Shown here: one piece after another, positions 19,025 to 51,141 of the stretch
How the letters are laid out: the number at the start of each line of letters is the position of its first letter
Position numbering within the stretch: the stretch's first letter is position 1
Virus record (IMG/VR): IMGVR_UViG_3300028840_001395
Span: 62,001 to 126,000 of that record
Strand: one strand, 5' to 3'
Length of the DNA: 64,000 nt
Notes under the pieces: generated by a model
Databases searched by the model: none
What the model saw: the letters and a program-made list of their open reading frames with translations, nothing else
Told to the model about the DNA's origin: nothing
Made by a program: the position numbers and the translations under genes

Positions 19025-21982
19025 CTACTTGATCTTCCTCTTCCCTGTATATCCCAGCGCCTTGCGGAACTCCTTGACGGCCTTGACCCACTTGGCCCGC
19101 GTGGTGGGGATGCGCTTCAACTCGTAGAAGAAGCGAGTGTTGTCCATGATGCCCCGGTAGAGGGTCTTGTCCTTGTCGGACTTCGCGGCAACTCCTGTAA
19201 AGAAATCAATGGCTTTGTTCTTCTGGGCCTTGGTCTTCAGCTCCGAGATCTGCCCCTTGAACTCATCGACGGCATCATCGAGTCGGGTGTAGAACTCGAT
19301 GTCATCCATCGCGTGGAAGTCGAAGTCCTTGGGATTCTGCTTCACCACCCGGCCATGCCCGAAGTCCCGGTCACCGAACCCCTGCTCCCTCAGCTCCCTG
19401 AGTGCGTGCTGCAATTTGGGGTCATCCTCACGGAAGCCCTGGCTCCTGGGATTCATCCATTGCTGATACTGGGGTGTCCGCAGCTTCTTCGGAGGCAGAC
19501 CCGCCTTGCCACCCACTGCATCGGAGAGGAAGCTCTGGGCGAAATGCTGGCTCTCATGCCGGACGATTCTCCGAAGCTGGTTGCGGCTCCAGTCGTAGAT
19601 GCTGTTGGGCAGCGTGATCTTCATCGTCCTGATGATGTCCGCCCAGGTCGCCAAGGCCCCGGGGATCTCATCAGTGGTCAGGATGACTCTGACCTTCTGG
19701 AAGGGGGTGATTGGCTTGCCCGCCTTGAGGGCCTTGACCTCGGCCCGGAGATCCTTGAGTTCTTGGATCTCGATCTTCCTGAGCTTGGCCAGGCCAGGAT
19801 CTAGCTTCTCACCCCGAGCCTTGAGGGCCTTGATCTTCTTCTCGTCGTCCTTGTTCCACTGCTCCCGCATCTTCAGCCGCTTCTCTGCTCCGGCCAGATA
19901 CTTCTTGATGCGGCCCTGGTCGGCCAGGATGCCCTCGTACTTCCAGCCCTTCAGGAGCGGGGCCACCTCAAACTCCCGCTCCACGTTGCCGGGGGTGGCC
20001 TTCTTGTACTCGGACACCTGGAACTTCTTGAGGTGGGCCTTCTCCTTCTCCAGACGCTCGTTCTCCCCAGCCCCCCACATCTGCTGGGCGTTGACCCGTT
20101 CCTCGATGCCCTTGAACATGCGATCCATCGTGGCGGCGAGCTTGCCCTCACGGTAGAGCTTGTAGAAGTCCCGCGACTTGATGCCGGGTCGCCCGGGGAC
20201 ACCCACGGCTGTCCAGGCGAACTGGCTGGTCACCAGATGCACGATGCTGTTCTTGCCCTTCTGGCCCGCGTACATCTCCCAGAGGGCCTTGGGCTTGGTC
20301 TTCGCTCGGAGGGCCTTGCGGAACGCGGTGAAGGCCTTCTTGATCTTCTGGCCTTCCTTCTTCTTCTCGATGTCCAACTGGCGGTTGTATTCCATGCTCT
20401 TGTCGATGTCCGCCATGATCTTCGTGGCAGCTACCGACAAGGCCCACTTGGAGATCTCTTCGACCATCAAGGGCGGGGCTTCCAGGCGACCCGACGTGCG
20501 CTGGCTTGTCGCTCCAATCCACCTGGCGGCGACCCGGACAGCCACATCCTCATCTTCCAGGTCATCGAGGATGTCCTGCAACGAAGCCGTCTTGCCCAGC
20601 GCCTTCTGCACGAAGGTCTGGGGGTCGAATAGCAGCTTGGTCTTGCCGCCCAGGATGGCCTTCTCCAACGTGTCGGCCACTCCGCCTTGGCTCAGGAAGC
20701 GCAAGATGATCTCGGGGTTCACGTAGGAGCGGATGGTCGTCGCCACATCCTCGTGGCTCAACGCCTCCTGGGCCTTGTGGTAGGCCGCGTCGAGCGTCGC
20801 TGCGATCTCCTGGGCGACCCGTTCGGCCAGGTCGTCACCCTGCTTCTTGGAGAAGCCCTTGATTCTGGCGTAGAGTTCGGCCTGAGCTTCGCGCAGGTTG
20901 TCGAGGACGGTCTCGGTCGCCTTGAGCTTGCGGAAGTCGGTCGGGGAGAAGTCCCCGAGCTGCTCCCGAAAGTACCGCTGCAGGTCGGTGTAGGTGAACT
21001 GCTGACCCTTGGAGGTCGTGAAGATGAACTTCGACCCGCCCTTCTTCGCCTTCTCCACGTAGTCCTTGAGGATCTTGACGATGGAGGCGTCCGAGAGGTT
21101 GGCGACGTTGGTGCCGCCCTTCTTTCCGAGGAACTCCATCGTGACGAAGTTGTTTCGGACGAACTTGACGTGCTTGGGGCCGAGGGTGATGGCCCCGAAG
21201 GTCTCGATCTCGACCTCCTTGCCGTCCTGAATCTTGACGACCTTGTTGCCCTCCTTGCCGGGCCGGATGCCAGTCTCCATGATGATGGCGGTGATGAGGG
21301 CAGCCATCTGGGTCAGTTCATCGCTGCTCTTGAGGTCTTTCTTCACCTGGCGGGCGATCTTGTTGTAGTGCTTGATGAGCTTGTGCATTTTCTGGATCTT
21401 CTTCGCCAGCGTCAGATGCTCGTTCTCGAAGCGGTCGGTGACCTTGGAGATCACCCCGCTCTCGTCCACCTCAACCACGATGTTCTTCGGCAGGAACGCC
21501 CGGATGTCCTCGGGCACGACCTCCCGCAAGGGGGCCTGACTCTCCGCGATGGCGATGGCCTCAAAGCCCTTGTCGGCCTGCTTGCCGACCTCGACCAGCA
21601 CCTTCTTGAGCGGGAACTTGTTGGGGTAGCAGAGCCGGTTCCTCGCCTGATACAAGACCTGGGAGCGCCACGACTTCGCCTTGGGATTCTGTGCCTCTGA
21701 CCCTATCCAGGTGTTCAGGTAGTTCTCGACCTGGGGGAGCACCTTGATCATCTTGATGAAGACCCGTCCCCTGCGGGAGAGGCTCACCTTGTCCTTGCCG
21801 GGCTGGGCGGCGTTGGCCTGGTCAGCGTAGGGCTGCAGCTCCTTCAGGAGCGCCTTGAAGGCATTGAGAGCGCCCTTGATGTGCTTCTCACGGGCCTTGA
21901 TGTCCGCCTGCCAGGCCCGGCTCTCGGGCGTAGGACGCCGAGCACAGACCCAACGGGCAGCTACTCGGGAGGCCGTGGTCAT
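19025..21982 (-). CDS. Type IB topoisomerase fused to a C-terminal zincin-like (HExxH) domain
   Basis: TGIRPGKE, FLGKKG, DFRKLKAT, LSH..ATTIRSYVNP; VRHESQH. Confidence 0.8.
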   Translation of the reverse strand: MTTASRVAARWVCARRPTPESRAWQADIKAREKHIKGALNAFKALLKELQPYADQANAAQPGKDKVSLSRRGRVFIKMIKVLPQVENYLNTWIGSEAQNPKAKSWRSQVLYQARNRLCYPNKFPLKKVLVEVGKQADKGFEAIAIAESQAPLREVVPEDIRAFLPKNIVVEVDESGVISKVTDRFENEHLTLAKKIQKMHKLIKHYNKIARQVKKDLKSSDELTQMAALITAIIMETGIRPGKEGNKVVKIQDGKEVEIETFGAITLGPKHVKFVRNNFVTMEFLGKKGGTNVANLSDASIVKILKDYVEKAKKGGSKFIFTTSKGQQFTYTDLQRYFREQLGDFSPTDFRKLKATETVLDNLREAQAELYARIKGFSKKQGDDLAERVAQEIAATLDAAYHKAQEALSHEDVATTIRSYVNPEIILRFLSQGGVADTLEKAILGGKTKLLFDPQTFVQKALGKTASLQDILDDLEDEDVAVRVAARWIGATSQRTSGRLEAPPLMVEEISKWALSVAATKIMADIDKSMEYNRQLDIEKKKEGQKIKKAFTAFRKALRAKTKPKALWEMYAGQKGKNSIVHLVTSQFAWTAVGVPGRPGIKSRDFYKLYREGKLAATMDRMFKGIEERVNAQQMWGAGENERLEKEKAHLKKFQVSEYKKATPGNVEREFEVAPLLKGWKYEGILADQGRIKKYLAGAEKRLKMREQWNKDDEKKIKALKARGEKLDPGLAKLRKIEIQELKDLRAEVKALKAGKPITPFQKVRVILTTDEIPGALATWADIIRTMKITLPNSIYDWSRNQLRRIVRHESQHFAQSFLSDAVGGKAGLPPKKLRTPQYQQWMNPRSQGFREDDPKLQHALRELREQGFGDRDFGHGRVVKQNPKDFDFHAMDDIEFYTRLDDAVDEFKGQISELKTKAQKNKAIDFFTGVAAKSDKDKTLYRGIMDNTRFFYELKRIPTTRAKWVKAVKEFRKALGYTGKRKIK

Positions 21983-22575
21983 CCCAGCCTGCGGAGCCAG
22001 CGGGCAGCGACCCTCGTTGCCACGACCTTGCGCCACTTCGACCAGCCCTCGTCAGCCAACCCTTGCACATCTTCTTCGGTGCAGACCACCTCATGGGGGG
22101 TCGCCCGGACAGGATGGGCCACGAAAGACTTGTCGAGGCCCTCCACGAAGCGAGCGATCTTCTTGATGTTGTGGAGGTTGTCCTCCCAGACATGGACGGT
22201 ATCGATCTGGGGATGCTTGGCCAGGATACCAGATACCACGGCCACCTTGTAGCCGCCCGTCGAGTCCCCGGGGTTCAGATAGACCTCATCGAAGTTGAGT
22301 CCCGCCTGCTTGAGCAGTTCACCGACACGCAGGCGGTGGGCGCTCTGAAGAGGGCGACCTGTGCAGAGGATGGCCCAGGTGTCCCGGTCGCTGATGCTCT
22401 GCTTGGCTGCCTGGACGGTCTTGCCGATCCACCAGTCGCGGCCCGGCTTGAGGGGAACGCAGGGAGGCCCCAGTGACTCGGGGGCCATGATCCAAGAGTC
22501 CTTGCCCCACCAGTCGGGGCGCTGTGGCGACCGGAAGAGAGTGCCGTCGAAGTCGTAGAGGTGGAGTTCGGCCAT
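21979..22575 (-). CDS. HAD-family phosphatase (Swiss-Army-Knife RNA-repair-like HAD)
   Basis: YDFDGTLFRSP, LCTGR, VWEDN. Confidence 0.75.
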   Translation of the reverse strand: MAELHLYDFDGTLFRSPQRPDWWGKDSWIMAPESLGPPCVPLKPGRDWWIGKTVQAAKQSISDRDTWAILCTGRPLQSAHRLRVGELLKQAGLNFDEVYLNPGDSTGGYKVAVVSGILAKHPQIDTVHVWEDNLHNIKKIARFVEGLDKSFVAHPVRATPHEVVCTEEDVQGLADEGWSKWRKVVATRVAARWLRRLG

Positions 22576-22841
22576 CAGATCTTCATCCGCTTGAGCTTGG
22601 CGATCTGCGGCCCCAGAATCTTGCCGACCTGGCGCATGACGCTGGCGGACTCTGCCACGTCGGGATGTCCATCGGCCAGGCCCGGAGTGCGGCCCTTGGG
22701 TGCCCAGTGGATGAGGACTTCCTCGATGTCATCGAGGGCCTTGTCGAGCTTCTTGACGCCCCAGTCGAGTTCCTTCTGGGCTTCGGTTGCCCCCTGGCGC
22801 TGAAGATGGCGGGCGGCGACTTTCTTGGCGAGGGCATCCAT
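22575..22841 (-). CDS. Hypothetical protein (KKVAARHL N-terminus)
   Basis: SD GGAGG. Confidence 0.7.
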   Translation of the reverse strand: MDALAKKVAARHLQRQGATEAQKELDWGVKKLDKALDDIEEVLIHWAPKGRTPGLADGHPDVAESASVMRQVGKILGPQIAKLKRMKI

Positions 22842-22897
22842 CGGGAACCTCCGTGGCTCTACACGGGAGCGAATCATAGGGAATCTACCGACATCAT

Positions 22898-22968
22898 CTT
22901 ATCTCTCGGGCCTCCGAAGTAGTCTGGGCGAAAAAAGTGCTTGACAACTTTGCCCAGAGGTGTATCCT
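22898..22968 (+). promoter_or_regulatory. Tandem promoters of tRNA array 1: phage motif CTTAT-N14-AAGTAGTCT and sigma70 TTGACA-N16-TATCCT
   Basis: Both motifs read directly from the sequence. Confidence 0.7.
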
Positions 22969-22996
22969 GGGAAGCCACGAAAGGGAACGACCCGAG

Positions 22997-23098
22997 ATGA
23001 ACCGCTTGTTTACCACCACCTCAACGACCACACTGAGCCTTACCTGGCTCAGCCGGTCGTACCTGTCCGAGCGCAGGCCGGAGGTGGTGAGCGGGTAG
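22997..23098 (+). CDS. Putative attenuator leader peptide 1 (33 aa, MNRLFTTTSTTTLSLTWLSRSYLSERRPEVVSG)
   Basis: Lies between promoter and terminator; its 3' end can pair with the terminator 5' arm. Confidence 0.75.
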   Translation: MNRLFTTTSTTTLSLTWLSRSYLSERRPEVVSG

Positions 23099-23121
23099 TT
23101 CCTACGCCAAGTGAGAACACC

Positions 23122-23163
23122 CGAAACCCCCTCCGGCGACTGGCCGGAGGGGGTTTCGTGCTT
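23122..23163 (+). terminator. Attenuator terminator hairpin of array 1
   Basis: CGAAACCCCCTCCGGC/GCCGGAGGGGGTTTCG 16-bp stem, weak U tail. Confidence 0.75.
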
Positions 23164-23166
23164 AGA

Positions 23167-23217
23167 GGGCCTGAGAGTGGGCCGCGACCTTTGACAAGTG
23201 AATAGGATTTCCCGTGC
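23167..23217 (+). promoter_or_regulatory. Hairpin + boxA-like element + 5' strand of long-range stem
   Basis: GGGCCTGAGAGTGGGCC then CTTTGACAAGTGAATAG; near-identical copy heads array 2. Confidence 0.65.
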
Positions 23218-23245
23218 TGACGGAATGCCACTGCCGTCAGCACAT

Positions 23246-23332
23246 GCTGGGATGGCGGAATTGGTAGACGCGCCGGTTCGAGAGGCCGGTGGACTTAGTG
23301 CCGTGGGGGTTCGACTCCCCCTCCCAGCACCA
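23246..23332 (+). tRNA. tRNA-Leu(GAG), C at position 33
   Basis: Cloverleaf, long variable arm, loop TCGAGAG, CCA. Confidence 0.75.
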
Positions 23333-23334
23333 AT

Positions 23335-23427
23335 GGAGAGGCAAGCCGATGGGTGACGGCAGCCGCTTGGAAAGCGGTCGAGGTCTGTTGAAGGCCCTTG
23401 AGGGTTCGACTCCCTCTCTCTCCGCCA
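23335..23427 (+). tRNA. tRNA-Ser(GGA)
   Basis: Loop TTGGAAA, CCA. Confidence 0.9.
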
Positions 23428-23439
23428 AAGAAACGCAGT

Positions 23440-23528
23440 GCTGGGGTGGCGGAATGGTAGACGCGCCAGGCTCAGAACCTGGTGGGACGCAAGTGCCCGT
23501 GGGAGTTCGACTCTCCCCCTCAGCACCA
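23440..23528 (+). tRNA. tRNA-Leu(CAG)
   Basis: Loop CTCAGAA, CCA. Confidence 0.9.
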
Positions 23529-23530
23529 AC

Positions 23531-23620
23531 GGAAGGTCAAGCAGATTGGCGACTGCAGCGGCTTGCTAAGCCGTCGAGGTGTAAAAGCCCTTGGGGGTTC
23601 GACTCCCCCACCTTCCGCCA
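23531..23620 (+). tRNA. tRNA-Ser(GCT)
   Basis: Loop TTGCTAA, CCA. Confidence 0.9.
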
Positions 23621-23630
23621 ACTTCGCTAC

Positions 23631-23706
23631 AGGGGGCGCTCTGGGTAAGCGGGCTGGTCTCCAAAACCGGCTGATCTGGGGAGTTCGATTCTCCCGCCCC
23701 CTGCCA
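23631..23706 (+). tRNA. tRNA-Trp(CCA)
   Basis: Loop CTCCAAA, CCA. Confidence 0.85.
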
Positions 23707-23723
23707 GATGATGCAAAGCGCGT

Positions 23724-23809
23724 GCGGTGGTGGTGGAATGGTAGACACGCCAGCTTGAGGGGCTGGTCCTGGAAACAGGGTGGAGGTTCGACTCCTCTTC
23801 ACCGCACCA
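23724..23809 (+). tRNA. tRNA-Leu(GAG)
   Basis: Loop TTGAGGG, CCA. Confidence 0.9.
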
Positions 23810-23817
23810 ATCTTCGT

Positions 23818-23892
23818 GCTGGGGTAGCTCATTGGTAGAGCACCTGAGTGAAGCCCAGGGTGTAGGTGGTTCGATTCCACTCCCCAGCACCA
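23818..23892 (+). tRNA. tRNA-Phe(GAA), atypical anticodon arm
   Basis: Loop GTGAAGC, CCA. Confidence 0.75.
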
Positions 23893-23903
23893 CAAACTTC
23901 GTT

Positions 23904-23980
<77 letters not shown>

Positions 23981-23989
23981 AGACCCGTT

Positions 23990-24076
23990 CGGAGAGTTGA
24001 GCAGTGTGGTGAGCTTAGCGGGCTGTAACCCCGTGGCCGATTGGCTTTGGAGGTTCGATTCCTCTCTCTCCGACCA
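23990..24076 (+). tRNA. tRNA-Tyr(GTA)
   Basis: Loop CTGTAAC, CCA. Confidence 0.85.
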
Positions 24077-24085
24077 AGAACGCAT

Positions 24086-24173
24086 GGCGCGGGAAGCGTG
24101 TGGCTGGGACCGCCGGTTGACTGTAAATCAACTGCCTGATGGCTGAGGGGTTCGATTCCTCACCGCGCCACCA
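24086..24173 (+). tRNA. tRNA-Tyr(GTA)
   Basis: Loop CTGTAAA, CCA. Confidence 0.85.
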
Positions 24174-24195
24174 ACTTCGGGGGTATCATGCCCTC

Positions 24196-24666
24196 ATGAG
24201 CGTCTGGTTCCACGGAACGACCCAGGAGAACGCCGAGAAGATCCTACAAGAGGGCTTCCAGCCCGGCACCTACTTCGGTGAGCACCTGGAGGATGCTGTC
24301 CACTTCGGCGGTGGGTTCGTCTTTGAGGTGTACTTCAAGGAGGCACCCTCCAAGAACTGGCAGTGGCGCTGCTCCGAGGTCATCCCCGTGAGCGCGATCC
24401 TCAACCTCATCAGGTATCAACCCGAGGTCGTTCACTGGAGTCCAGAAGCAGCCCGCCGGATGAAGGCGGATCACTTCGAGGAGGAAGGCTACACCATCTG
24501 TGACACCTGCGATGGCAGAGGTCAGATGGAAGCCTACCCGCCCCTCACCCACTGGCGCGACCGGGAGAAATGCACCCTCTGCCCCGACTGTAGGGGGTAT
24601 GGCTCCCCAGACAAACGCGACGCCTGGGATGAAATGTCCAGGAAGATGGAAGAGGCAAAGGGTTAA
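24196..24666 (+). CDS. ADP-ribosyltransferase-like domain plus CxxCxGxG zinc finger
   Basis: WFHGTT...ILQEGF...YF; CDTCDGRG, CPDCRGYG. Confidence 0.55.
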   Translation: MSVWFHGTTQENAEKILQEGFQPGTYFGEHLEDAVHFGGGFVFEVYFKEAPSKNWQWRCSEVIPVSAILNLIRYQPEVVHWSPEAARRMKADHFEEEGYTICDTCDGRGQMEAYPPLTHWRDREKCTLCPDCRGYGSPDKRDAWDEMSRKMEEAKG

Positions 24667-24752
24667 GGCCCTGTGGCGGAATTGGGAGACGCGCCCGCCT
24701 TAAAACTGGGTGTCCTAGCGGCGTCCGGGTTCGAGTCCCGGCGGGGCCACCA
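24667..24752 (+). tRNA. tRNA-Leu(TAA)
   Basis: Loop CTTAAAA, CCA. Confidence 0.8.
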
Positions 24753-24757
24753 CCTGC

Positions 24758-24836
24758 GAGGGGCGGAGCCAGTCATTGCCGTAGGCTGGCGGGTAGGCAA
24801 AACGGGCCAGGGTTCGAGTCCCTCAGCCCCTCATCA
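24758..24836 (+). ncRNA. tRNA-like element without a canonical anticodon arm
   Basis: GAGGGGC/GCCCCTC acceptor stem, T arm AGGG-TTCGAGT-CCCT, ends TCA. Confidence 0.5.
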
Positions 24837-24851
24837 AGACGCTTTGCGTGT

Positions 24852-24938
24852 GCGAGGGTGGCGGAATTGGTAGACGCGCCGGTCTTAGGAGCCGGTGTCC
24901 TCCGTGGCGTAGGGGTTCAAGTCCCCTCTCTCGCACCA
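24852..24938 (+). tRNA. tRNA-Leu(TAG)
   Basis: Loop CTTAGGA, CCA. Confidence 0.9.
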
Positions 24939-24946
24939 TCTTCGTT

Positions 24947-25032
24947 GCCAGAGTGGCGGAATGGTAGACGCGGCTGGCTCAAACCCAGTTGTCCGAAAGG
25001 GCGTGAAGGTTCGACTCCTTTCTCTGGCACCA
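24947..25032 (+). tRNA. tRNA-Leu(CAA)
   Basis: Loop CTCAAAC, CCA. Confidence 0.9.
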
Positions 25033-25044
25033 ACTTCGATCAAT

Positions 25045-25119
25045 GCCAACGTGGCTCAAAGGTAGAGCAGTCGCCTCGTAAGCGACAGGTTGTCGGTTCA
25101 AGTCCGACCGTTGGCTCCA
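25045..25119 (+). tRNA. tRNA-Thr(CGT)
   Basis: Loop CTCGTAA, CCA. Confidence 0.92.
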
Positions 25120-25126
25120 GATTCGT

Positions 25127-25202
25127 GCCAGTGTAGCTCAGTTGGTAGAGCGCCTCCCTTGTAAGGAGGATGTCGCGGGTTCGATCCCTGTCACTGGCTC
25201 CA
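25127..25202 (+). tRNA. tRNA-Thr(TGT)
   Basis: Loop CTTGTAA, CCA. Confidence 0.92.
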
Positions 25203-25316
25203 CGGTATAATCCCCAGGCCCCCTCGGTGAGTGGGAATGGGCAAGGCGGCGGTCAAGGTCCCCCACCGGCCTTGGCGTGAAGTGTCGCGGCTCACCTTGG
25301 GGGCTTCATCAACAAC

Positions 25317-25391
25317 GCCAACGTGGCCAAGTGGTAAGGCACCGCCTTGGTAAGGCGGCGATCCCCGGTTCAAGTCCGGGCGTTGGCTCCA
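25317..25391 (+). tRNA. tRNA-Thr(GGT)
   Basis: Loop TTGGTAA, CCA. Confidence 0.92.
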
Positions 25392-25400
25392 AAGTTGTGA

Positions 25401-25555
25401 GGGGGAGTGGCGAAATTGGTAAACGCGCTGACTCAAACTGGCGTTTCCACCCTACCCTCCCGGCGAGGAGGAACTGCGAAGCGGCTTCAGAGTATCTGGG
25501 CTTGAAACCCAGTGCCTTTCGAGGCTTGTAGGTTCGATTCCTACCTCCCCCTCCA
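25401..25555 (+). tRNA. Interrupted tRNA (anticodon TGA) with a 68-nt insert in the anticodon stem
   Basis: Removing 25431-25498 gives an 87-nt type II cloverleaf. Confidence 0.65.
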
Positions 25556-25558
25556 TTC

Positions 25559-25633
25559 GGCCCCTTCTTCTAGTGGTTAGGATACCAGACTCTCAATCTG
25601 GCGACACGGGTTCAACTCCCGTAGGGGTCACCA
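25559..25633 (+). tRNA. tRNA-Glu(CTC)
   Basis: Loop CTCTCAA, CCA. Confidence 0.9.
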
Positions 25634-25643
25634 CAGTTCTCAT

Positions 25644-25719
25644 GGCCCGGTGGTCTAGTGGGCAGGACGCTGGACTCTCAATCCAGAGGTCGCGGGTTCA
25701 AACCCCGTCCGGGTCACCA
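25644..25719 (+). tRNA. tRNA-Glu(CTC)
   Basis: Loop CTCTCAA, CCA. Confidence 0.9.
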
Positions 25720-25934
25720 TCTATTCCCTTGCCGCCCCCTGTTTCCGTCGTCAGATGGATGCGGGCGCGGTAGGTTTCCCGCCTGGGCATTCCAACCGTC
25801 CGGGGTCAAGGGTCCGGAGGCCCTGATGGGGGTGACCTCATCGGGAGGCCCGAGAGAAGGTATCCGGTATGGGAACCAGCAGGGGGCGGCTTACCTCTTC
25901 GCCCGTGAGAGTAGTATAGGTGTGGAGGTGTCCC

Positions 25935-26801
25935 GTGATCACCGCGATTCGCATCAGCAACCCCGAGACCGCCTGTGTCCCCTGGTGGTCAGAGGTGGAG
26001 CAACTCAAGGGCCTCAAGAGCATCAAGTTCGACCCTGGACTCAATGTCCTGGTTGGCCCCAATGGCTCGGGCAAGAGCACCATCCTGATGGCCCTGGCCC
26101 GGATGCTTCACTGCGCCCAAGGGGATGTCCAAGTTGTCACGCAGACCTCCGTGATTGACATCTGTGGGCCTGGTCTTGGCTCGAAGATCATGAAGGGCGT
26201 GATGCCCGTCCATGATGGCCTCCCGGTGATGCACTTCGACCCGTCCAAGACGGTCGGTCTCTTCGGCGGCTCTTTCGACTGGGACTTCGGGATGGAGGGC
26301 ATCCAGAACACGATGGCCAAAGGGTCAGCGGGGCAGACCACCCTCATCAGATTCGACCGAGTGGGAGCGGTACTCCTGGGTCACAAGGAACCAGAGGGTG
26401 TCGAGTGGAAGCACACCCCCTACAAGGACACGACCAAGAATCAGATCGAGAAGATCCTCGCGGGCAAGCCGATCAAGGGGAAGAAAAGCCGACCGACCCT
26501 CCTGCTGGATGAACCGACTCGCAGCCTCGACATGAGGTACCAGATGGGGGTCTGGGTCAACATCGCAAGAGCGGCCCAGAAGCGTCTCCAGATCATCGTG
26601 GCGGCGCACTCTCCCCTGGCGCTCCTCATCCCAGGGGCGAACATCATCGAGATGGAGAAGGGCTACGCGGAAGCGGTCAAGCTCAACCTGGACGCGCTCA
26701 TCAACACGGAGCGGATGATCGAACTCATCAACCAGGAACCGCAGAAGCCCAAGAAGAAGGCTGTCAAGAAGCCCAAGAAGAAGGCTGCCAAGAAGAAGTG
26801 A
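25935..26801 (+). CDS. ABC/AAA-type ATPase
   Basis: GPNGSGKST, GSAGQ, LLLDEP, AHS; phage promoter motif upstream. Confidence 0.85.
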   Translation: MITAIRISNPETACVPWWSEVEQLKGLKSIKFDPGLNVLVGPNGSGKSTILMALARMLHCAQGDVQVVTQTSVIDICGPGLGSKIMKGVMPVHDGLPVMHFDPSKTVGLFGGSFDWDFGMEGIQNTMAKGSAGQTTLIRFDRVGAVLLGHKEPEGVEWKHTPYKDTTKNQIEKILAGKPIKGKKSRPTLLLDEPTRSLDMRYQMGVWVNIARAAQKRLQIIVAAHSPLALLIPGANIIEMEKGYAEAVKLNLDALINTERMIELINQEPQKPKKKAVKKPKKKAAKKK

Positions 26802-26857
26802 GTTCTCCGGGTTCGGGGCCAGGGCCGGAAGGCAGCAACCTCGAACCCAACTTCAAT

Positions 26858-26934
26858 ACCCTCGTAGCTCAGGGGATAGAGCACTGGCCTCCGAAGCCAG
26901 GTTAGCACAGGTTCAATTCCTGTCGAGGGTACCA
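26858..26934 (+). tRNA. tRNA-Arg(CCG)
   Basis: Loop CTCCGAA, CCA. Confidence 0.88.
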
Positions 26935-26935
26935 C

Positions 26936-27024
26936 GGAGGGGCAAGCAGATTGGCGACTGCACCCGCCTCGAAAGCGGACGAGCTGTGAAAGGCCTTGGG
27001 GGTTCGACTCCCCCTCCCTCCGCC
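26936..27024 (+). tRNA. tRNA-Ser(CGA)
   Basis: Loop CTCGAAA, CCA. Confidence 0.9.
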
Positions 27025-27038
27025 AAAAAGAAAACCAC

Positions 27039-27124
27039 GGAGGCGATCTGGCTGGATGAAGGCCTCGCCTTGAAAGCGAGTGGTCCGAAAGGGCTTGGGG
27101 GTTCGAGTCCCTCCGCCTCCGCCA
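27039..27124 (+). tRNA. tRNA-Ser(TGA)
   Basis: Loop CTTGAAA, CCA. Confidence 0.85.
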
Positions 27125-28687: not shown

Positions 28688-29048
28688 GGGGGCGAAATGG
28701 CTTCGACTGGGGTGTTGAAGCTCAGGGCGCGTTCCGTGATTGTCGCAGGTCACGTTAAACGGCGGCACACTACAACTGCCAACGACGAGGCGGTTCTCCA
28801 GGCGGCTTAGGCCACCTCGTCCGACCGGGAACCCGTATCCCCGAGGGGTCCTGGGAGGGCGTAAGCAAAATCGAGGATAGGGTCTGCTGCTAGCTGCCCG
28901 GCTCGGCAACCTGAAACGTGCTAGGGATGCTGGTCACGAGAGTCTGCCACTGGACGCTCGGGGTCAAAAGACAAACCAGGGGCTATGAACGTAGGGCCTT
29001 GAAGTGGATTGCTTCAGGACAGGGGTTCGACTCCCCTCGCCTCCACCA
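28688..29048 (+). ncRNA. ssrA: tmRNA, tag (A)ANDEAVLQAA
   Basis: GGGGGCG...TTCGAC 5' end, G3.U70, tag ORF 28778-28810, T arm and CCA. Confidence 0.93.
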
Positions 29049-29101
29049 TTCAATCCTTGACACCTCCACACCACGCTGATACAGTGGGTGTCGGAGGTCA
29101 G

Positions 29102-29743
29102 GTGGGCCGGAAGAAGATTGAAGTTGTCTGCATGAATCCTGCTTGTGGAAAGCCCCACATGAAGGCCCTCAGCGAGGTCAACAGGTCAAAGAAGCTGGGC
29201 CGGGGTTTCTACTGCTGTCGTTCCTGCTCGGTCACACACGCCAACGAGTTCCTGGGCCGGAAGGCCAAGGAGGAGACCCGGACGTGCGAGGTCTGCGGAA
29301 CCACCTTCCAGGTGCTCGGCAAGGCCAAGTCCAGAATCACCTGCTCCAACGAGTGTGCCGACACCCTCCGCTACAAGAAGATGAACCCAGACTCCAAGGA
29401 GCGACAGCGGGAAGCCGGTCGGCAGACAGGCAACCTGAGTGTGTCCGCCTCCCTCAAGAGTCGGGAGATGCCGAAGTATGCGAAGCTCGTCCCGTATCTG
29501 AAAAGCAAGGGCGTGAACTTCGAGTTCGAGGCAGAGATTGGCCCCTACGTGGTTGATCTCTGCCTGCCTGACCACGGTATTGTAGTGGAGTTCGATGGCC
29601 CCTACCACTCTTGGCATGAGGTGGTGGCCAGCGATGCCCAGAGAGATAACTACCTCACCAGGGCAACCTGGCGGGTGTTCCGAATCGGAGTCGAGGCCGG
29701 AGCAGTGATTTCACCCTCCGCCCTGGCTCCACTTGGTCTTTGA
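29102..29743 (+). CDS. DUF559/Vsr-like endonuclease with zinc-finger N-terminus
   Basis: YVVDL...VVEFDGPYH...DAQRDNYL...WRVFRI; Cys clusters. Confidence 0.8.
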   Translation: MGRKKIEVVCMNPACGKPHMKALSEVNRSKKLGRGFYCCRSCSVTHANEFLGRKAKEETRTCEVCGTTFQVLGKAKSRITCSNECADTLRYKKMNPDSKERQREAGRQTGNLSVSASLKSREMPKYAKLVPYLKSKGVNFEFEAEIGPYVVDLCLPDHGIVVEFDGPYHSWHEVVASDAQRDNYLTRATWRVFRIGVEAGAVISPSALAPLGL

Positions 29744-45463: not shown

Positions 45464-46012
45464 CTACCCGGACTCCAAGGCTCCGTCCCAGTACTGCACG
45501 GTGCCGAGGTAATCCTGCCACGTCGGCGGCATCCCCTCCGTCCACGAGAGAACGGGGAAGCTGACACCGGGCAGCGACTTCGGCTTGACCGGCTTCGAGC
45601 GGAGCTTCATCCTGGCCTGCTCCGGCGTCCTGTCCTTCTTGCGCTGGTTGCACTCCATGCAGGACACGACGATGTTCTCCCAGCGAGTCCGGCCCCCTGC
45701 AGCCTGCGGGATGACGTGATCGAAGGTGAACTCCGCCATCGACACCTTGGTGCCGCAGTACTGGCAGGTGCCCTTGTCACGCAGCCAGACGTTCTTCCGG
45801 TTGAACTTGACGCCCTTGCGGAAGATGCCGGTGACCTTGTGGACGAAGCGCACGATGGACGGCATCGGGAACACCTGTGACGGCGACCGAATTGTCCGAT
45901 CCTCATACTCCTCCACCACCGCTGCGCGTCCCGAGATGACCCAGGTGATCGCCTTCTGCCAGCTTACGCGGCTGATCGGCATGTAGGTGTTGGTGAGTAC
46001 TAGCGTGTCCAT
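45464..46012 (-). CDS. HNH endonuclease (McrA-like)
   Basis: CQYCG, DHVIP, CMECNQRK. Confidence 0.9.
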   Translation of the reverse strand: MDTLVLTNTYMPISRVSWQKAITWVISGRAAVVEEYEDRTIRSPSQVFPMPSIVRFVHKVTGIFRKGVKFNRKNVWLRDKGTCQYCGTKVSMAEFTFDHVIPQAAGGRTRWENIVVSCMECNQRKKDRTPEQARMKLRSKPVKPKSLPGVSFPVLSWTEGMPPTWQDYLGTVQYWDGALESG

Positions 46013-46116: not shown

Positions 46117-46193
46117 TGGTCAGGGTGACTGGAATCGAACCAGCGACTTCCTGCGTCCAAGGCAGGTACTCTACCAGACTGAGCTACACCCTG
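46117..46193 (-). tRNA. tRNA-Pro(TGG)
   Basis: Loop CTTGGAC, CCA. Confidence 0.9.
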
Positions 46194-46194
46194 A

Positions 46195-46271
46195 TGGTGA
46201 CCCCGGCGGGAGTTGAACCCGCGCCTCCGGCTTGAAAGGCCAGCGTCCTAACCGTTAGACTGTACGGGGCC
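46195..46271 (-). tRNA. tRNA-Glu(TTC)
   Basis: Loop CTTTCAA, CCA. Confidence 0.85.
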
Positions 46272-46276
46272 GCGAA

Positions 46277-46355
46277 TGGTACTCCGGAGAGGACTTGAAC
46301 CTCCAACAGTCCCAGGTTCGTAGCCTGGCGCTCTATCCAGTTGAGCTACCGGAGC
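46277..46355 (-). tRNA. tRNA-Arg(ACG)
   Basis: Loop CTACGAA, CCA. Confidence 0.9.
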
Positions 46356-46367
46356 ATCGTATGAAGT

Positions 46368-46443
46368 TGGTACCCCCAGCAGGACTCGAACCTGCGACCT
46401 CGTGGTCCGCAACCACGCGCTCTTTCCTCTGAGCTATGGGGGT
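46368..46443 (-). tRNA. tRNA-Arg(GCG)
   Basis: Loop TTGCGGA, CCA. Confidence 0.85.
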
Positions 46444-46445
46444 AC

Positions 46446-46522
46446 TGGAACGACGGGTGAGAGTCGAACTCACATCCTCCTGGGGCACAACCAGGCGCTG
46501 CTTCCTACTGAGCTTCCGTCGC
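46446..46522 (-). tRNA. tRNA-His(GTG), U73
   Basis: Loop TTGTGCC, CCA. Confidence 0.75.
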
Positions 46523-46524
46523 AT

Positions 46525-46598
46525 TGGTCCTGGCGAGAAGAGTCGAACTTCTGTTTCCTGATCCACAGTCAGGCGTCCTACCACTAGACGACGCCAGG
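46525..46598 (-). tRNA. tRNA-His(GTG), A73, no G-1
   Basis: Loop CTGTGGA, CCA. Confidence 0.8.
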
Positions 46599-46602
46599 GA
46601 TG

Positions 46603-46905
46603 TCAGTGGCGGCGCTTCCGCCTTCGGCGCTCGCGGGGCAGCTTCGCCTTGATGCGCTTCCCCGGTCTGATCTTGCGGATGAAGACCAGCGCCTTCTGGA
46701 TCTGCGGGTGGGCCTGTAGTCCTTCGATGGTGTCAAGGCCCAGTGTCTCGTCCCGCAGCTCCTTGTTCGAGAACAAGGTGTGGATGGTCTTGTGGCACGC
46801 TGCACAGAGCAGGGCCGTGTCGAACCTGTCCTTGCCCCTCGTTTTCAGGTGGTGGTCCGACATCCGGTGCTGGGGGACATCTTGCTCGCACAGCGCACAG
46901 ATCAT
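46603..46905 (-). CDS. Small HNH-like protein
   Basis: CALC...DHHL...CAACHKTIH. Confidence 0.75.
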   Translation of the reverse strand: MICALCEQDVPQHRMSDHHLKTRGKDRFDTALLCAACHKTIHTLFSNKELRDETLGLDTIEGLQAHPQIQKALVFIRKIRPGKRIKAKLPRERRRRKRRH

Positions 46906-46974
46906 CTCACGATTCCTCCCGTCGTGCCTATTCTACTCCAACAGGGGCCACTCCGGGCCTCCTGCTTTCATTCT

Positions 46975-47051
46975 TGGTCGGGGTGACTGGATTTGAACCA
47001 GCGGCCTCCGCGTCCCGAACGCGGCGCTCCACCAGGCTGAGCTACACCCCG
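46975..47051 (-). tRNA. tRNA-Pro(CGG)
   Basis: Loop TTCGGGA, CCA. Confidence 0.92.
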
Positions 47052-47072
47052 ATCTGTGGTATAGTGGCGGTC

Positions 47073-47651
47073 ATGACAAAGCCCATCACGAAGAAGGAGA
47101 TCCGGGAAGTCGTCCAAGGCGTCCACGGAGAGGACATCCAGATCGAGCACGCCCCACAGGAGGAGGTGGTCGATCTGTCCGAAGAAATCACCACCATCCT
47201 GAAGGCCATCGGCTTCCCGACCGCCTGGGTGTCCGACGAGTCAACCCTCTGGGACTTCTGGTTCTCCCGCGACCCCGACGAGGTGCAGAAGGAAGAAGCC
47301 GCGCTCACCGAGACAGTCGGCTTCGAGGTGTCCATCAAGGACTACCTGGTGGACATCGCCCGGCGCATGAAGGGCCTCCCGCCTCGTCCCGAAGTCTGGA
47401 AGTTCCCCAAGGAGGTTGAGATCCTCTTGGCCATCGTGGACCGCGATGATGCGGTGGTCACAGACCAGACCACCTTCCGGGACTTCATGGACCCCGGAGA
47501 CCCCGAGGGCCTGGCCAGGATCTCCCGTCGCTGCAAGACGCTGGAGAAGCGGTATGAGTTCCTGGTCGATCACGACGACACCTTCCTCGATGTCGCCCGC
47601 AAGATGCGGAAGTTCCGCAACGAGCACCGGGCCAAGAGTGGTAGGCGGTAG
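47073..47651 (+). CDS. Hypothetical protein with an internal duplication, antisense to array 2
   Basis: Two units ending YLVDIARRMK / FLDVARKMR. Confidence 0.75.
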   Translation: MTKPITKKEIREVVQGVHGEDIQIEHAPQEEVVDLSEEITTILKAIGFPTAWVSDESTLWDFWFSRDPDEVQKEEAALTETVGFEVSIKDYLVDIARRMKGLPPRPEVWKFPKEVEILLAIVDRDDAVVTDQTTFRDFMDPGDPEGLARISRRCKTLEKRYEFLVDHDDTFLDVARKMRKFRNEHRAKSGRR

Positions 47652-47714
47652 GGGACTTGAACCCCTGACCTCCGCCTTGTAAGGGCGGCATTCTCCCAAC
47701 TGAACTAACCGCCT
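47639..47714 (-). tRNA. tRNA-Val(TAC)
   Basis: Loop CTTACAA, CCA. Confidence 0.92.
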
Positions 47715-47722
47715 ATCGAAGT

Positions 47723-47797
47723 TGGTGGGCCTGACTGGACTCGAACCAGCGACTTCTACCGTGTGAAGGTAGCACTCTCCCACTGAGTTACAGGCCC
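47723..47797 (-). tRNA. tRNA-Val(CAC)
   Basis: Loop TTCACAC, CCA. Confidence 0.9.
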
Positions 47798-47803
47798 GAA
47801 GAT

Positions 47804-47880
47804 TGGTCGGGGTGACTGGACTCGAACCAGCGACCTTCGGTCCCCCAGACCGACGCGCTACCAGGCTGCGCCACACCCCG
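47804..47880 (-). tRNA. tRNA-Pro(GGG)
   Basis: Loop CTGGGGG, CCA. Confidence 0.9.
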
Positions 47881-47884
47881 ATAT

Positions 47885-48505
47885 CTACTCCCCGAACAGG
47901 TCGAGGATGTCTCCAATGTCATCGTGTTTCGTGAAGTTCCGGCAGAAGGTCGCCCGGTGCAGAGGCGTCAACCCGTGTTCCCGGATGGCCTCGATGTGGC
48001 CCTTCGACCCGTAGCCCTTGTTGCCCTCCCAGCCGTACTGGGGATACTGCTTGGCCATCTGCACCATGTAGGCATCTCGCTCGACCTTGGCCACGATGCT
48101 CGCAGCCCCGATGATCCAGTCCTTCGCGTCACCCTTGACGATGAACTCGGTCGGGATGGGCCGGAAGTCCACCCCGATGGGCTTGCCGTCGATGCGGACA
48201 GCTTCGACCGGGAGATCGAGAGCTAGCAGACCCTCGATGGCCTCCCAGAAGCACTCCAAGAGGGCGGGGTTGATGCCCACCTCGTCCACCCTGGCAGCCG
48301 TTCGGATGCTGACCCGATGGTGGAGGCCCGGATGTTCAGTTATCGCCTTGTGGAGCCTCTCACGCTTCCTGGGGGTCAGCTTCTTGCTGTCCGTCACGCC
48401 CTCGATGGGGGCCATATCGGCGGGGGCCATCACAGCACAGACGTAGCACCCACCGGCCAGGGGGCCTCGCCCAACCTCGTCTGCACCGATGATGTAAGTG
48501 CTCAT
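47885..48505 (-). CDS. rnhB: Ribonuclease HII
   Basis: GADEVGRGPLAG, DSKKL, KGD...AASIVAKVERD, NKGY. Confidence 0.95.
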   Translation of the reverse strand: MSTYIIGADEVGRGPLAGGCYVCAVMAPADMAPIEGVTDSKKLTPRKRERLHKAITEHPGLHHRVSIRTAARVDEVGINPALLECFWEAIEGLLALDLPVEAVRIDGKPIGVDFRPIPTEFIVKGDAKDWIIGAASIVAKVERDAYMVQMAKQYPQYGWEGNKGYGSKGHIEAIREHGLTPLHRATFCRNFTKHDDIGDILDLFGE

Positions 48506-48533
48506 GCCCTATACTACCCTATCTCGGATGGGA

Positions 48534-48628
48534 TGGTAGCCCCGGAGGGAGTCGAACCCTCGGTGGAGCCCCTACGTCTCCGGCACGGTTTATAAGACCG
48601 CCGCTGTGACCGTTCAGCTTACGGGGCC
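48534..48628 (-). tRNA. tRNA-Ile(TAT) with long variable arm
   Basis: Loop CTTATAA, about 23-nt variable region, CCA. Confidence 0.75.
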
Positions 48629-49452
48629 AGCCCGTCCGCGAGGGCGAAGGTCTTGTCGGCCAGGTCGGGGTCGAGTCCCTTCATGGCCTCGGGGATGTCC
48701 TTCTGCTTGTAGCGGTCGGAGAAATGGGTCAAGACCAGCGCCTCGACCTGGGCCAACAGATGCTCCCGCACCCCGATCTGGAGCAGGTGCGTGTGGCCCC
48801 GGCTCTCCGCGAACTCCCCGGTGTGCTCGTTGGTCAGGAAGGTCGCCTCGGTGATAAGGATGCGGGCCTTCCGGATGCCGGAGATCCGGTCAAGGGTGCT
48901 GATACGGGTGTCCCCCGTGTACACGACCTCCAGGGTCTTGACCTCATCCGTGACCTCGACGCCCTCCTCCTGCCGGAGCCGTCCGATCTCCTTGCCAGGC
49001 AGGTCTGCGAACTCGGGCTTGAGCTTTCTCTTCGCCCGGAAGATGGCGTAGCCCTGCGACGGAACCGTGTGGTCAGTCGGGAACGCCGCCACCGACAGCC
49101 CCTTACCGAGCTTCATCTCTTCGTCGCCCGGAGCCAGGGGGAGCACGTCGCACTTGAAGCCGCCGTGCTGGAGAGGTTCCCACAGGGCGAACATCTGGTG
49201 GATGGGCTTGACCAGGTGAGGCGGCACGATGAAGCGGGAGGGCTTCATCCCCATCATGTTTCGGGTGAAGGCGTGCCGGACGATGCCCGCCATGTGGTCA
49301 ACGTGTCCGTGCGTGATGAGCACCGTTCGGATGCGCTGGGCCTCGCGGGGGCATACCCCCATGTCGAAGACCAGCTTGAAGTCGGGCATCCAGATGCAGG
49401 TTCCCAGGCCGCTGACGGACTCTCCTCGGATCTCGGTGTTCAGGATTCGCAT
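48619..49452 (-). CDS. rnz: Ribonuclease Z (MBL fold)
   Basis: THGHVDH, flexible arm KLKPEFADLPGKEI, TGDT, EAT, THFS.RY. Confidence 0.85.
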   Translation of the reverse strand: MRILNTEIRGESVSGLGTCIWMPDFKLVFDMGVCPREAQRIRTVLITHGHVDHMAGIVRHAFTRNMMGMKPSRFIVPPHLVKPIHQMFALWEPLQHGGFKCDVLPLAPGDEEMKLGKGLSVAAFPTDHTVPSQGYAIFRAKRKLKPEFADLPGKEIGRLRQEEGVEVTDEVKTLEVVYTGDTRISTLDRISGIRKARILITEATFLTNEHTGEFAESRGHTHLLQIGVREHLLAQVEALVLTHFSDRYKQKDIPEAMKGLDPDLADKTFALADGLAP

Positions 49453-49688
49453 GGCTCTTTTTCCTCCCGAGGCTCCATGCCTCACCTGTTCTTAGCAACC
49501 TCGCGCAACCTGGCGGGCTGCGGCGTCAGTGGAAGAACAGGTGTCCACCGAGACTACTCTATGAGAAGGAAAAGTAAGCGACCCCCTGCCCCGTTCCCGG
49601 TGCTCCGCTGGCGAGTCCTGGGTGGCGAGGCTTGTCCCCAGCGTGGTGGCCCTACCTCACTAAAGCCGTTCGCAGGGGGTCACGAAGT

Positions 49689-49762
49689 TGGAGACAGCGG
49701 TCGGATTTGAACCGACGATCAGGGGGTTGCAGCCCCTAGCCTTACCGCTTGGCTACGCTGTC
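49689..49762 (-). tRNA. tRNA-Cys(GCA)
   Basis: Loop CTGCAAC, U73, CCA. Confidence 0.9.
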
Positions 49763-49770
49763 ATGTTCCT

Positions 49771-49845
49771 TGGTCGCTATGGAGGGACTCGAACCCCCGA
49801 CACAGTGGATATGAGCCACTTGCTCTGCCTCTGAGCTACATAGCG
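49771..49845 (-). tRNA. tRNA(CAT), elongator Met or Ile2
   Basis: Loop CTCATAT, CCA. Confidence 0.85.
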
Positions 49846-49847
49846 AT

Positions 49848-49921
49848 TGGCTGAGGCATGAGGACTCGAACCTCAACTTCCGGGGCCAGAACCCGGCGTC
49901 CTGCCATTAGACGATGCCTCA
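49848..49921 (-). tRNA. tRNA-Gln(CTG)
   Basis: Loop TTCTGGC, U1-A72, CCA. Confidence 0.85.
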
Positions 49922-49945
49922 GTAGAAATCAGGAGAGGGCAGGAG

Positions 49946-50281
49946 CTACACGCCACCCAGTTCCTTCTGGGCCTCGTGGATCCCCTTCATGATGTGACGC
50001 GGGAACTGGATCTTCCGGCTCTTGAACAAGCCCCTCCCCTTGTCAACCAGTTCGGAGTCACCCCGGCTCGACCCTGGGCGGCGGGAGTTCTCATCCCACA
50101 TGAAGACCGTCCAGGTGCCGTCGTTGACCAGGCCGACCTTGACCAACACCCCGGCATCCTTGTCGCGGATCTCGATGGTATCGAACATCTTCGCGGTCTT
50201 CTTGAGCAGGGGCACCAGATGCTTCCTGGTCTCGGGCACTTCCCCTGCCAGCTTGATGAGGGCCTCGCGGAGTTGAGACAT
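49946..50281 (-). CDS. Hypothetical protein with LIKLA..PE.R.HL.PLLKKTA N-terminal motif
   Basis: SD AGGAGG. Confidence 0.75.
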   Translation of the reverse strand: MSQLREALIKLAGEVPETRKHLVPLLKKTAKMFDTIEIRDKDAGVLVKVGLVNDGTWTVFMWDENSRRPGSSRGDSELVDKGRGLFKSRKIQFPRHIMKGIHEAQKELGGV

Positions 50282-50327
50282 CAGACACCTCCTTGTCTCT
50301 ACTCCAGGGTGACCATAGACGAAAAAT

Positions 50328-50403
50328 TGGCTGGGGCAGAGGGATTTGAACCCCCGATCACAGGGTCAGAGCCTGCTGCCTTACCAGACTTGGCTATGCC
50401 CCA
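50328..50403 (-). tRNA. tRNA-Gln(CTG)
   Basis: Loop CTCTGAC, CCA. Confidence 0.9.
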
Positions 50404-50408
50404 GCGGA

Positions 50409-50674
50409 TGGTGCGGGTGGTGGGAGTCGAACCCACAAGACCAGAACGTCTCTTATCGGGACTCACGCTTCCCTGTGGGGGGATGAGGTTCCCCAACCCC
50501 TGCCATTACTGACAGCGGCCCCAACCCGGTGCTTCTGAAGCCTAGAGACCGTGCCCCGTCCGGGAACGCCACAACGCAGCTTTTTACCTTCCGGTAGCAC
50601 CCTGGCCCCTCAATCACGAGGTTTCCGGTTTCACCTTGGTTTTCCGGTTCCGTTGCCTGTTAGGTCACACCCGC
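50409..50674 (-). ncRNA. 266-nt RNA with tRNA acceptor/T arm and a large insert in place of the anticodon loop
   Basis: GCGGGTG/CACCCGC-A-CCA, GTGGG-TTCGACT-CCCAC, ACCGGAA/TTCTGGT stem. Confidence 0.6.
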
Positions 50675-50914
50675 ATTCGTGTCCACGCTCTGACGAGCCT
50701 CGATGCCTTCCTGCTCCAGCTTCAGGTGCTTCCTGATGTAGCGCATGAACAGAAGAGCCTTGTCCTCGGCCAGAAAGGTCGCGGTCCCCACGTCATCGAT
50801 GGGAACCGGGAACTCGAACCCGCATTCGGTGCGGTACCAGAGGTTGCTGTCGCAGTAGAACGCGAAGCGAACCTTCTTCCCTGACTTCACCATCTCTGTG
50901 AGTCGCTGTGCCAT
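50660..50914 (-). CDS. Conserved phage hypothetical protein
   Basis: LWYRTECGFEFPVPIDDVGTATFLAEDKALLFMRYIRK. Confidence 0.8.
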   Translation of the reverse strand: MAQRLTEMVKSGKKVRFAFYCDSNLWYRTECGFEFPVPIDDVGTATFLAEDKALLFMRYIRKHLKLEQEGIEARQSVDTNAGVT

Positions 50915-50934
50915 TTCTGGCCTCCTCCCGAAGT

Positions 50935-51009
50935 TGGCAGGGGCGGAGGGAATTGAACCCATCATCTCAGGAATCAAAGGCCTGTGTCCTACCGTTGAAC
51001 GACACCCCC
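50935..51009 (-). tRNA. tRNA-Gln(TTG)
   Basis: Loop CTTTGAT, CCA. Confidence 0.75.
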
Positions 51010-51128: not shown

Positions 51129-51141
51129 ATCTATGTGTCCG

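Follow-up and report, generated by a model that had tools for sequence, protein, structure and literature searches.

Predicted leader-peptide attenuators upstream of two tRNA gene arrays in a huge phage

The first leader and its tRNA array

The window analysed here is a 64,000 nucleotide stretch (positions 62,001 to 126,000) of IMG/VR virus record IMGVR_UViG_3300028840_001395. It is part of a single 435,804-bp contig of an uncultured huge phage with 62% G+C that carries 71 ARAGORN calls, a tmRNA and 70 tRNA calls, several of the latter with anomalous anticodons. Near-identical DNA is present in contigs of three sediment or seawater metagenome runs. Within the window 22 tRNA genes lie on the + strand (array 1), a tmRNA lies at 28688-29048, and 44 tRNA calls lie on the - strand (array 2, 60868 down to 46117). 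The features in front of array 1 are as follows:

22941-22968 (+), promoter P1, TTGACA-N16-TATCCT, which matches 10 of 12 consensus positions of a sigma-70-type promoter
22997-23098 (+), leader ORF 1, ATG to TAG, 33 codons, of which about codons 2-23 are the predicted sensing codons
23012-23022 (+), region 1 (ACCACCACCTC, codons 6-9), predicted to pair with region 2 as the anti-antiterminator
23077-23088 (+), region 2 (GCCGGAGGTGGT, the last codons of the ORF), which can pair with region 1 or with region 3
23122-23163 (+), regions 3 and 4, a 16-bp G+C-rich terminator hairpin plus a T-rich tail
23167-23207 (+), nut-like element, a small hairpin-forming motif followed by a boxA-like CTTTGACAA (23189-23197)
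23214-23243 (+), hairpin immediately 5' of the first tRNA
23246-27123 (+), tRNA array 1, 22 genes and 17 anticodon species (Leu, Ser, Trp, Phe, Tyr, Thr, Glu-CTC, Arg-CCG)

The terminator hairpin has a 5' arm at 23124-23137, a loop at 23138-23142 and a 3' arm at 23143-23156, and two flanking pairs make it 16 bp. The nearest upstream gene is divergent (- strand, 22575-22877), so the hairpin is not the terminator of an upstream gene. Region 2 pairs with the terminator 5' arm at 11 of 12 positions, with one U-C mismatch. The 201-nt leader RNA folds far better than shuffled sequences (z = -6.8), and in that fold the ORF end pairs with ACCACCACCTC at 23012-23022 and the terminator forms; there are therefore four regions with the classical 1:2, 2:3 and 3:4 alternatives. 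The T-tail in the window (TTTCGTGCTT) is weak and was not called by a simple terminator scan, although relatives have T6-T7 tails. The initial annotation, which had described the promoter, the ORF, the hairpin, the array, the codons used and the absence of Ala, Lys, Gln, His, Ile, Cys and Asp codons, is correct in each of these elements.

No Rfam family, T-box included, matches 22400-23245 at E up to 1, and no Pfam family, including that of the thr operon leader peptide, matches the peptide of 22997-23098 at E up to 0.01.

Related leaders and a second leader in the same genome

The neighbouring HAD-type protein led to two metagenomic contigs with a syntenic array (loci L003 and L009; L numbers denote loci or contigs of relatives), both of which carry a promoter, a small ORF and a hairpin in front of the first tRNA. 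A scan of metagenome contigs for the region-2 and region-3 core then gave 105 loci, most of which are chance matches in G+C-rich coding DNA, but about 15 are distinct genuine units (class 1 below), and ORFs homologous to leader ORF 1 occur in 14 other distinct loci. Every unit with downstream sequence runs into a tRNA array that starts with Leu, Ser or Tyr. The peptides have diverged strongly, but all 15 have a TTGACA-type promoter in the same position, an ATG, an ORF of 24-37 codons, a stop 7-11 nt after region 2 and, 23-36 nt further on, a hairpin of -26 to -37 kcal/mol with a T-rich tail. These relatives are not phylogenetically independent, and several of their arrays are cut by contig ends.

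In the full-length MFE of all 15 the terminator forms and region 2 pairs with an upstream stretch of the ORF, codons about 6-9 in 13 of them, codons 4-6 in L020 and codons 8-12 in L022; this includes three that lack the CACCTC motif and use another complementary sequence. This support for the 1:2 pairing is by prediction only, and 1:2 duplex energies, which were noisy, were not significantly better than those of shuffled controls, so we relied on the whole-leader MFE. RNAalifold takes 2:3 as the consensus pairing, but regions 2 and 3 of class 1 are invariant by ascertainment because the search pattern fixed them, and covariation within that class could not be tested. A genome-wide control for upstream complementarity to terminator arms was crude and missed the two leaders' own hairpins because of its tail rule; it indicates only that 10 of 11 complementarity occurs at about 3 of 45 hairpins and 11 of 11 at none.

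The start codons fall into two designs. In 8 of 15 the ATG lies 6-10 nt after the -10 hexamer with no Shine-Dalgarno-like motif before it (one hit in L016 is part of its -10 hexamer), a leaderless mRNA, and the rest, except L020, have a 5' UTR of 28-80 nt with an SD-like motif. That dichotomy is hard to explain unless the ORF is translated. Between close relatives, substitutions are concentrated in the promoter spacer, the 5' UTR and the spacer between stop and terminator. None falls in regions 2-4, and region 1 shows a single substitution (in L039, the closest relative) that keeps its pairing with region 2. The terminator segment is 100% identical in L039 and shows no variant in metagenome run X4. 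In-frame 3- and 6-nt indels occur, and the hairpin before the first tRNA shows compensatory changes in L003, L039 and run X4.

Upstream of array 2 lies the same architecture on the opposite strand, as follows:

61844-61871 (-), promoter of leader 2, TTGACA-N16-TATCAT, 11 of 12 consensus positions
61640-61792 (-), leader ORF 2, 50 codons, preceded by an SD-like motif, with region 1 at 61701-61693 and region 2 at 61652-61643
61577-61612 (-), terminator of leader 2, a 13-position stem with one wobble and one mismatch, then a T9 tract
61166-61573 (-), endonuclease VII-type gene (Pfam PF02945) between the leader-2 terminator and the nut-like element
61111-61165 (-), second copy of the nut-like / boxA-like element, heading array 2
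46117-60868 (-), tRNA array 2, 44 tRNA calls, 28 anticodon species serving 14 amino acids

The promoter (spacer included) and early transcribed region of leader 2 are about 80% identical to those of leader 1, so the two units are paralogues. The last codons of leader ORF 2 (GGTGCCTGGC) pair with its terminator 5' arm (GCCGGGCACC) at 10 of 10 positions with one G-U. Homologues of this class-2 leader, found through the neighbouring nucleotidyltransferase gene, are present at L121:7280-7429, L124:2718-2876 and L122:12862-13035, and a further one occurs in L022; all show the same layout ahead of arrays of the array-2 type (Asn- and Asp-led in L121, L124 and L122, Arg-led in L022). Their starts all follow an SD-like motif. 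The class-2 region-2 and region-3 sequences differ from those of class 1 but remain complementary to each other (11 of 11 in L122), and three different sequence designs keep the complementarity. Region 2 is predicted to pair with the Arg-Gln-His-Gln codons in 3 of 5 class-2 leaders; in the window, L121 and L124 this stretch is the predicted region 1, and the part from there to region 2 is nearly invariant at the nucleotide level.

The GenBank phage collection gave only tRNA matches and no leader. Of 66 pattern hits in GTDB genomes only one is genuine, and it is the same 19-kb contig as L020, binned into a MAG; no bacterial chromosomal copy was found. In IMG/VR, a search with the neighbouring HAD protein found no relative, the 17-nt motif GGGCCTGAGAGTGGGCC gave two hits, both inside coding genes of unrelated contigs with no tRNAs and taken as chance, and the class-2 pattern gave 22 hits, none followed by tRNAs. 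One IMG/VR contig (G001) holds only the distal end of its second array, so no leader 2 could be read from it.

Codon content of the leaders and their arrays

Are the codons of each leader quantitatively related to the tRNAs encoded downstream? We took codon usage from GC3-filtered long ORFs of the genome and used standard wobble. In leader 1, 24 of 32 codons are decoded by array-1 tRNAs against a genome background of 0.36 (binomial p = 8e-6), and 17 of 17 anticodon species are sampled against a random mean of 9.3 (p about 1e-4), although tRNA-Leu TAA and TAG are covered only through U34 wobble and not by their Watson-Crick codons. Relatives with long arrays give 14/14, 16/16, 15/16 and 10/10 species. 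In leader 1, 20 of 23 predicted sensing codons are Leu, Ser, Thr, Trp, Tyr or Phe, and in the pooled sensing windows of the family (codon 2 to nine codons before the end) 76% of 344 codons are one of these, against 29% in the genome. The last nine codons, which form region 2, hold one or two of them in 14 of the 15 leaders and four in L075.

The leader 2 peptide contains all 12 amino acids served only by array 2 and touches 28 of 28 of its anticodon species, against a random mean of 21.2 (p = 0.0014). The two leaders differ in composition with Fisher p = 2e-6, and leader 2 also uses rarer codons than expected (p = 6e-4). Leader 2 does hold 8 Leu/Ser/Phe/Thr codons plus one Arg CGG codon, all decoded by array 1, but most of these lie upstream of its region 1, where a stall would not induce read-through.

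Leader and array also co-vary in L022, which carries both classes. Its first array is Leu, Tyr, Ser, Phe, Cys, Leu, Leu, Trp, Ser, Ser, with no Thr, and its 24-codon leader has a Cys codon and no Thr run and covers 10 of 10 species (p below 5e-5). Tested against the other array this leader covers 6 of 14 species, below the 7.3 expected by chance, and the reciprocal control is also negative. Given the peptide sequence, however, synonymous codon choice is not significantly better at covering the tRNA species than genome usage would give, and part of the Thr/Ser content follows from region 1 having to complement GGAGGTGG. The sampling is therefore demonstrated at the level of amino acid and tRNA species only.

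Predicted attenuation, alternative explanations and the boxA-like element

We folded transcripts that end after region 3 with a ribosome footprint masked at each codon. Region 3 is held by region 2 unless the ribosome A site is at codon 24 or later in leader 1 (that is, on the last 9 or so codons) or at codon 44 or later in leader 2. Combined with the full-length fold (1:2 plus 3:4), this predicts three outcomes as follows: a ribosome that translates the leader without delay reaches the stop codon and covers region 2, so the terminator forms and the array is not transcribed; if the leader is not translated at all, 1:2 and 3:4 form and transcription again stops; and if the ribosome is delayed on or after region 1 because a decoding tRNA is scarce, region 2 is free and captures region 3, the terminator cannot form and polymerase reads on into the tRNA genes. 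Any slow codon in the window of sensing codons delays the ribosome, which is what a multi-codon panel requires.

We consider it likely, in the absence of RNA data, that each array is headed by a ribosome-mediated (leader-peptide) transcription attenuator, although translation, termination and read-through are inferred. The initial annotation had proposed for array 1 a translated leader whose codons mirror the downstream tRNAs, arranged as in trp/thr-type attenuators, and the conservation, the four-region fold, the start contexts, the second leader and the covariation in L022 support it. Its further suggestion that host anticodon nucleases, for example, are the trigger remains unsupported; tRNA cleavage by host nucleases, host shut-off and codon mismatch cannot be told apart, and an RNA-repair-type HAD protein nearby and tRNA-ligase-type domains, RtcB and peptidyl-tRNA hydrolase in relatives are only context. 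The circuit would be a supply-and-demand loop in which tRNAs are made when decoding of their codons is slow and shut off when it is fast. Why large phages carry dozens of tRNA genes, and when they express them, is an open question, for which codon-usage compensation and replacement of host tRNAs that are degraded or cleaved by defence nucleases are two current ideas; such a leader would mean that the phage regulates tRNA output by demand. In its broadest form, which we consider only somewhat more likely than not, a clade of huge phages runs a tRNA-supply homeostat in which two complementary leader peptides together test the decoding speed of essentially every tRNA species the phage carries, each opening its own array when any of them is limiting, with polymerase then handed to a boxA/Nus-type antitermination site. 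This would be the first leader-peptide attenuator known to govern tRNA genes and the broadest multivalent attenuator known, and it would offer a compact natural sensor of tRNA availability and a direct read-out of how phages respond to tRNA depletion, for example by host anticodon nucleases or host shut-off. The full-text searches we ran found no description of leader peptides or attenuators on tRNA operons or phage tRNA arrays.

Of the alternatives, a genuine translation-coupled attenuator that is generic, reporting overall translation capacity with a Leu/Ser/Thr-rich composition that is a by-product of RNA-structure constraints and shared ancestry, survives best but appears unlikely. The synonymous-codon null is not rejected, ACC-ACC-TCN in region 1 is forced by complementarity to GGAGGTGG, and family members share ancestry. 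On the other hand, species coverage is full in both window leaders, single Trp, Tyr, Phe and Cys codons are retained in peptides that are otherwise diverged, the Cys/Thr switch in L022 matches its array with negative cross-array controls, and the two leader classes have opposite compositions in one genome.

It is also doubtful that the small ORF and hairpin are a self-contained unit (a small peptide gene or an sRNA with its own terminator), with the array transcribed from a separate promoter downstream. The hairpin is very stable, and a conserved TTGACA hexamer that could be part of a second promoter lies between it and the first tRNA in most family members. However, no TAnnnT -10 hexamer lies 16-18 bp after this box in any member we read, and in L022 the box ends only about 5 nt before the first tRNA, which leaves no room for a promoter. 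Nor does this reading explain why the ORF end always complements the terminator 5' arm, why the stop position is fixed, or why leader composition tracks the array.

Least likely is an untranslated structured RNA switch that binds a protein or a tRNA in the manner of a T-box, since, in spite of the very strong predicted structure and the nucleotide-level conservation of regions 2 and 3, no Rfam family matches, a start codon (ATG, or GTG in L022's second leader) that is leaderless or SD-preceded in all but L020 is in frame with a stop 7-11 nt after region 2 in all 20 leaders examined, indels between close relatives are multiples of three, and peptide composition is non-random.

The mechanism class is classical. 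The attenuators of the E. coli trp, thr, his, leu and pheA operons likewise have a promoter, a short translated ORF, alternative 1:2, 2:3 and 3:4 pairings, an intrinsic terminator ahead of the regulated genes and regulatory codons that correspond to what the operon supplies, and the Thr run in the window leader resembles a thr-type leader. Here the regulated genes are tRNAs and not biosynthetic enzymes, a panel of 6-14 amino acids covering 17 or 28 tRNA species replaces the run of a single amino acid, about half of the family are leaderless mRNAs, and there is no sequence homology (no Pfam hit). The ilvGMEDA / ilvBN leaders probably sense several amino acids at once (Leu, Val and Ile), three against up to 14 here, and the output here is tRNA genes. 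T-box riboswitches have the same regulatory aim, to read the tRNA supply and antiterminate into translation-related genes, but a T-box binds uncharged tRNA directly and has no ORF, whereas the predicted sensor here is a translating ribosome. The leaderless short-ORF attenuators of mycobacteria (polycysteine uORFs) also start at the ATG of a short regulatory ORF, but control cysteine-related operons and sense one amino acid.

Polymerase that passes the terminator would next meet the nut-like element. A 41-nt core of it, about 50 nt with its flank, occurs exactly twice in the genome, once after each leader terminator. The family box, (G/A)ATCTTTGACAA, is conserved in relatives and matches the gamma-proteobacterial boxA consensus GYTCTTTAANA at 9 of 11 positions (8 of 11 in the window's own copy), position 8 being G and not A, and it resembles the E. 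coli rrn boxA-spacer (PMC5725501, PMC2724277). It lies in the predicted transcribed leader of a long untranslated RNA operon and is usually preceded by a hairpin, as boxB precedes boxA in rrn. We infer, from resemblance only, a Nus-type processive antitermination site that protects the long untranslated array from Rho once the attenuator has been passed. A literature search for the CTTTGACAA variant of boxA returned only primer sequences. CTTTGACAA itself occurs only twice in 436 kb; the second copy, at window position 51790, lies inside a coding gene in array 2 and is probably chance, and the box heading array 2 is a variant (CTCTGACAA). In the window the endonuclease VII gene has been inserted between the leader-2 terminator and this element, and L121 and L124 lack it at this place.

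The second leader and the elements that flank it

A second, paralogous unit of promoter, leader ORF and terminator heads tRNA array 2, and the 50-codon peptide of this unit contains all 14 amino-acid types of that array. The features at this locus, together with the array 1 copy of the element that follows each leader terminator, are as follows:

61577-61871 (- strand), second unit of promoter, leader ORF and terminator
61640-61792 (- strand), ORF of leader 2
61166-61573 (- strand), endonuclease VII-type gene
23155-23207 (+) and 61165-61111 (-), element of about 50 nt

The element of about 50 nt occurs only twice in the 436-kb genome, once just after each leader terminator. Its core resembles rrn boxA and is preceded by a small hairpin-forming motif. 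The endonuclease VII-type gene sits exactly between the T-tract of the leader-2 terminator and the boxA-like element, and relatives L121 and L124 (loci from related phages) lack it, so it looks like a homing-endonuclease insertion that would be expressed only by read-through.

Nucleotide features of the leader ORFs

Leader 2 uses significantly rarer synonymous codons than the genome (mean relative usage 0.355 against 0.44 expected, p = 6e-4), and many of these are the A/T-ending codons read by the array's U34 tRNAs. Both leader classes share GGAGGTG, a strong Shine-Dalgarno-like sequence, a few codons before the stop (23079-23086 and 61657-61650 (-) in the window). It might pause the ribosome on region 2, the ORF-end segment, and in class 1 it also pairs with the anti-SD-like CCTCC of the terminator arm. 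A microbial-mat metagenome (run X4) holds a diverged variant of the leader, aligned with window 22839-23158, whose differences lie in the promoter spacer and in the spacer between stop and terminator; only two lie in the ORF (one of them synonymous) and none in regions 1-4.

Other genes in and near the tRNA arrays

The following additional features were found in or near the arrays or, where indicated, elsewhere in the genome:

21979-22575 (- strand), HAD domain of the "Swiss Army Knife" RNA-repair type
19025-22036 (- strand), 1003-residue protein with a eukaryotic-type topoisomerase IB catalytic core
28688-29048, tmRNA
45464-46012, 29009-29743 and 51300-51930, further nuclease genes of mobile type
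52406-52481, 59821-59907, 48534-48628 and 52092-52161, and genome positions 241943-242033 and 412787-412950, unusual tRNA calls

The HAD domain is encoded divergently next to leader 1. In relatives (related loci L006 and L120-L124), its homologues carry tRNA-ligase-type domains, and RtcB, an RNA ligase / poly(A)-polymerase-type protein and peptidyl-tRNA hydrolase lie near the arrays. The topoisomerase IB core was identified by its match to Pfam PF01028 (E = 3e-17). The nuclease genes that sit in or beside the arrays are an HNH gene, a DUF559 gene, and an unscanned ORF (about 51300-51930) that we only suspect is an endonuclease. Relatives show the same, with HNH and PDDEXK_5 genes in L122.

The phage-encoded tmRNA (tag ANDEAVLQAA) follows array 1, while in relative L003 the tmRNA lies inside the array. 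The unusual tRNA calls include apparent four-base and two-base anticodons, a 95-nt tRNA-Ile(TAT), a 70-nt tRNA-Leu(GAG) inside array 2, a CTA-anticodon (amber-reading) tRNA, and two GGGA-anticodon tRNAs elsewhere in the genome.
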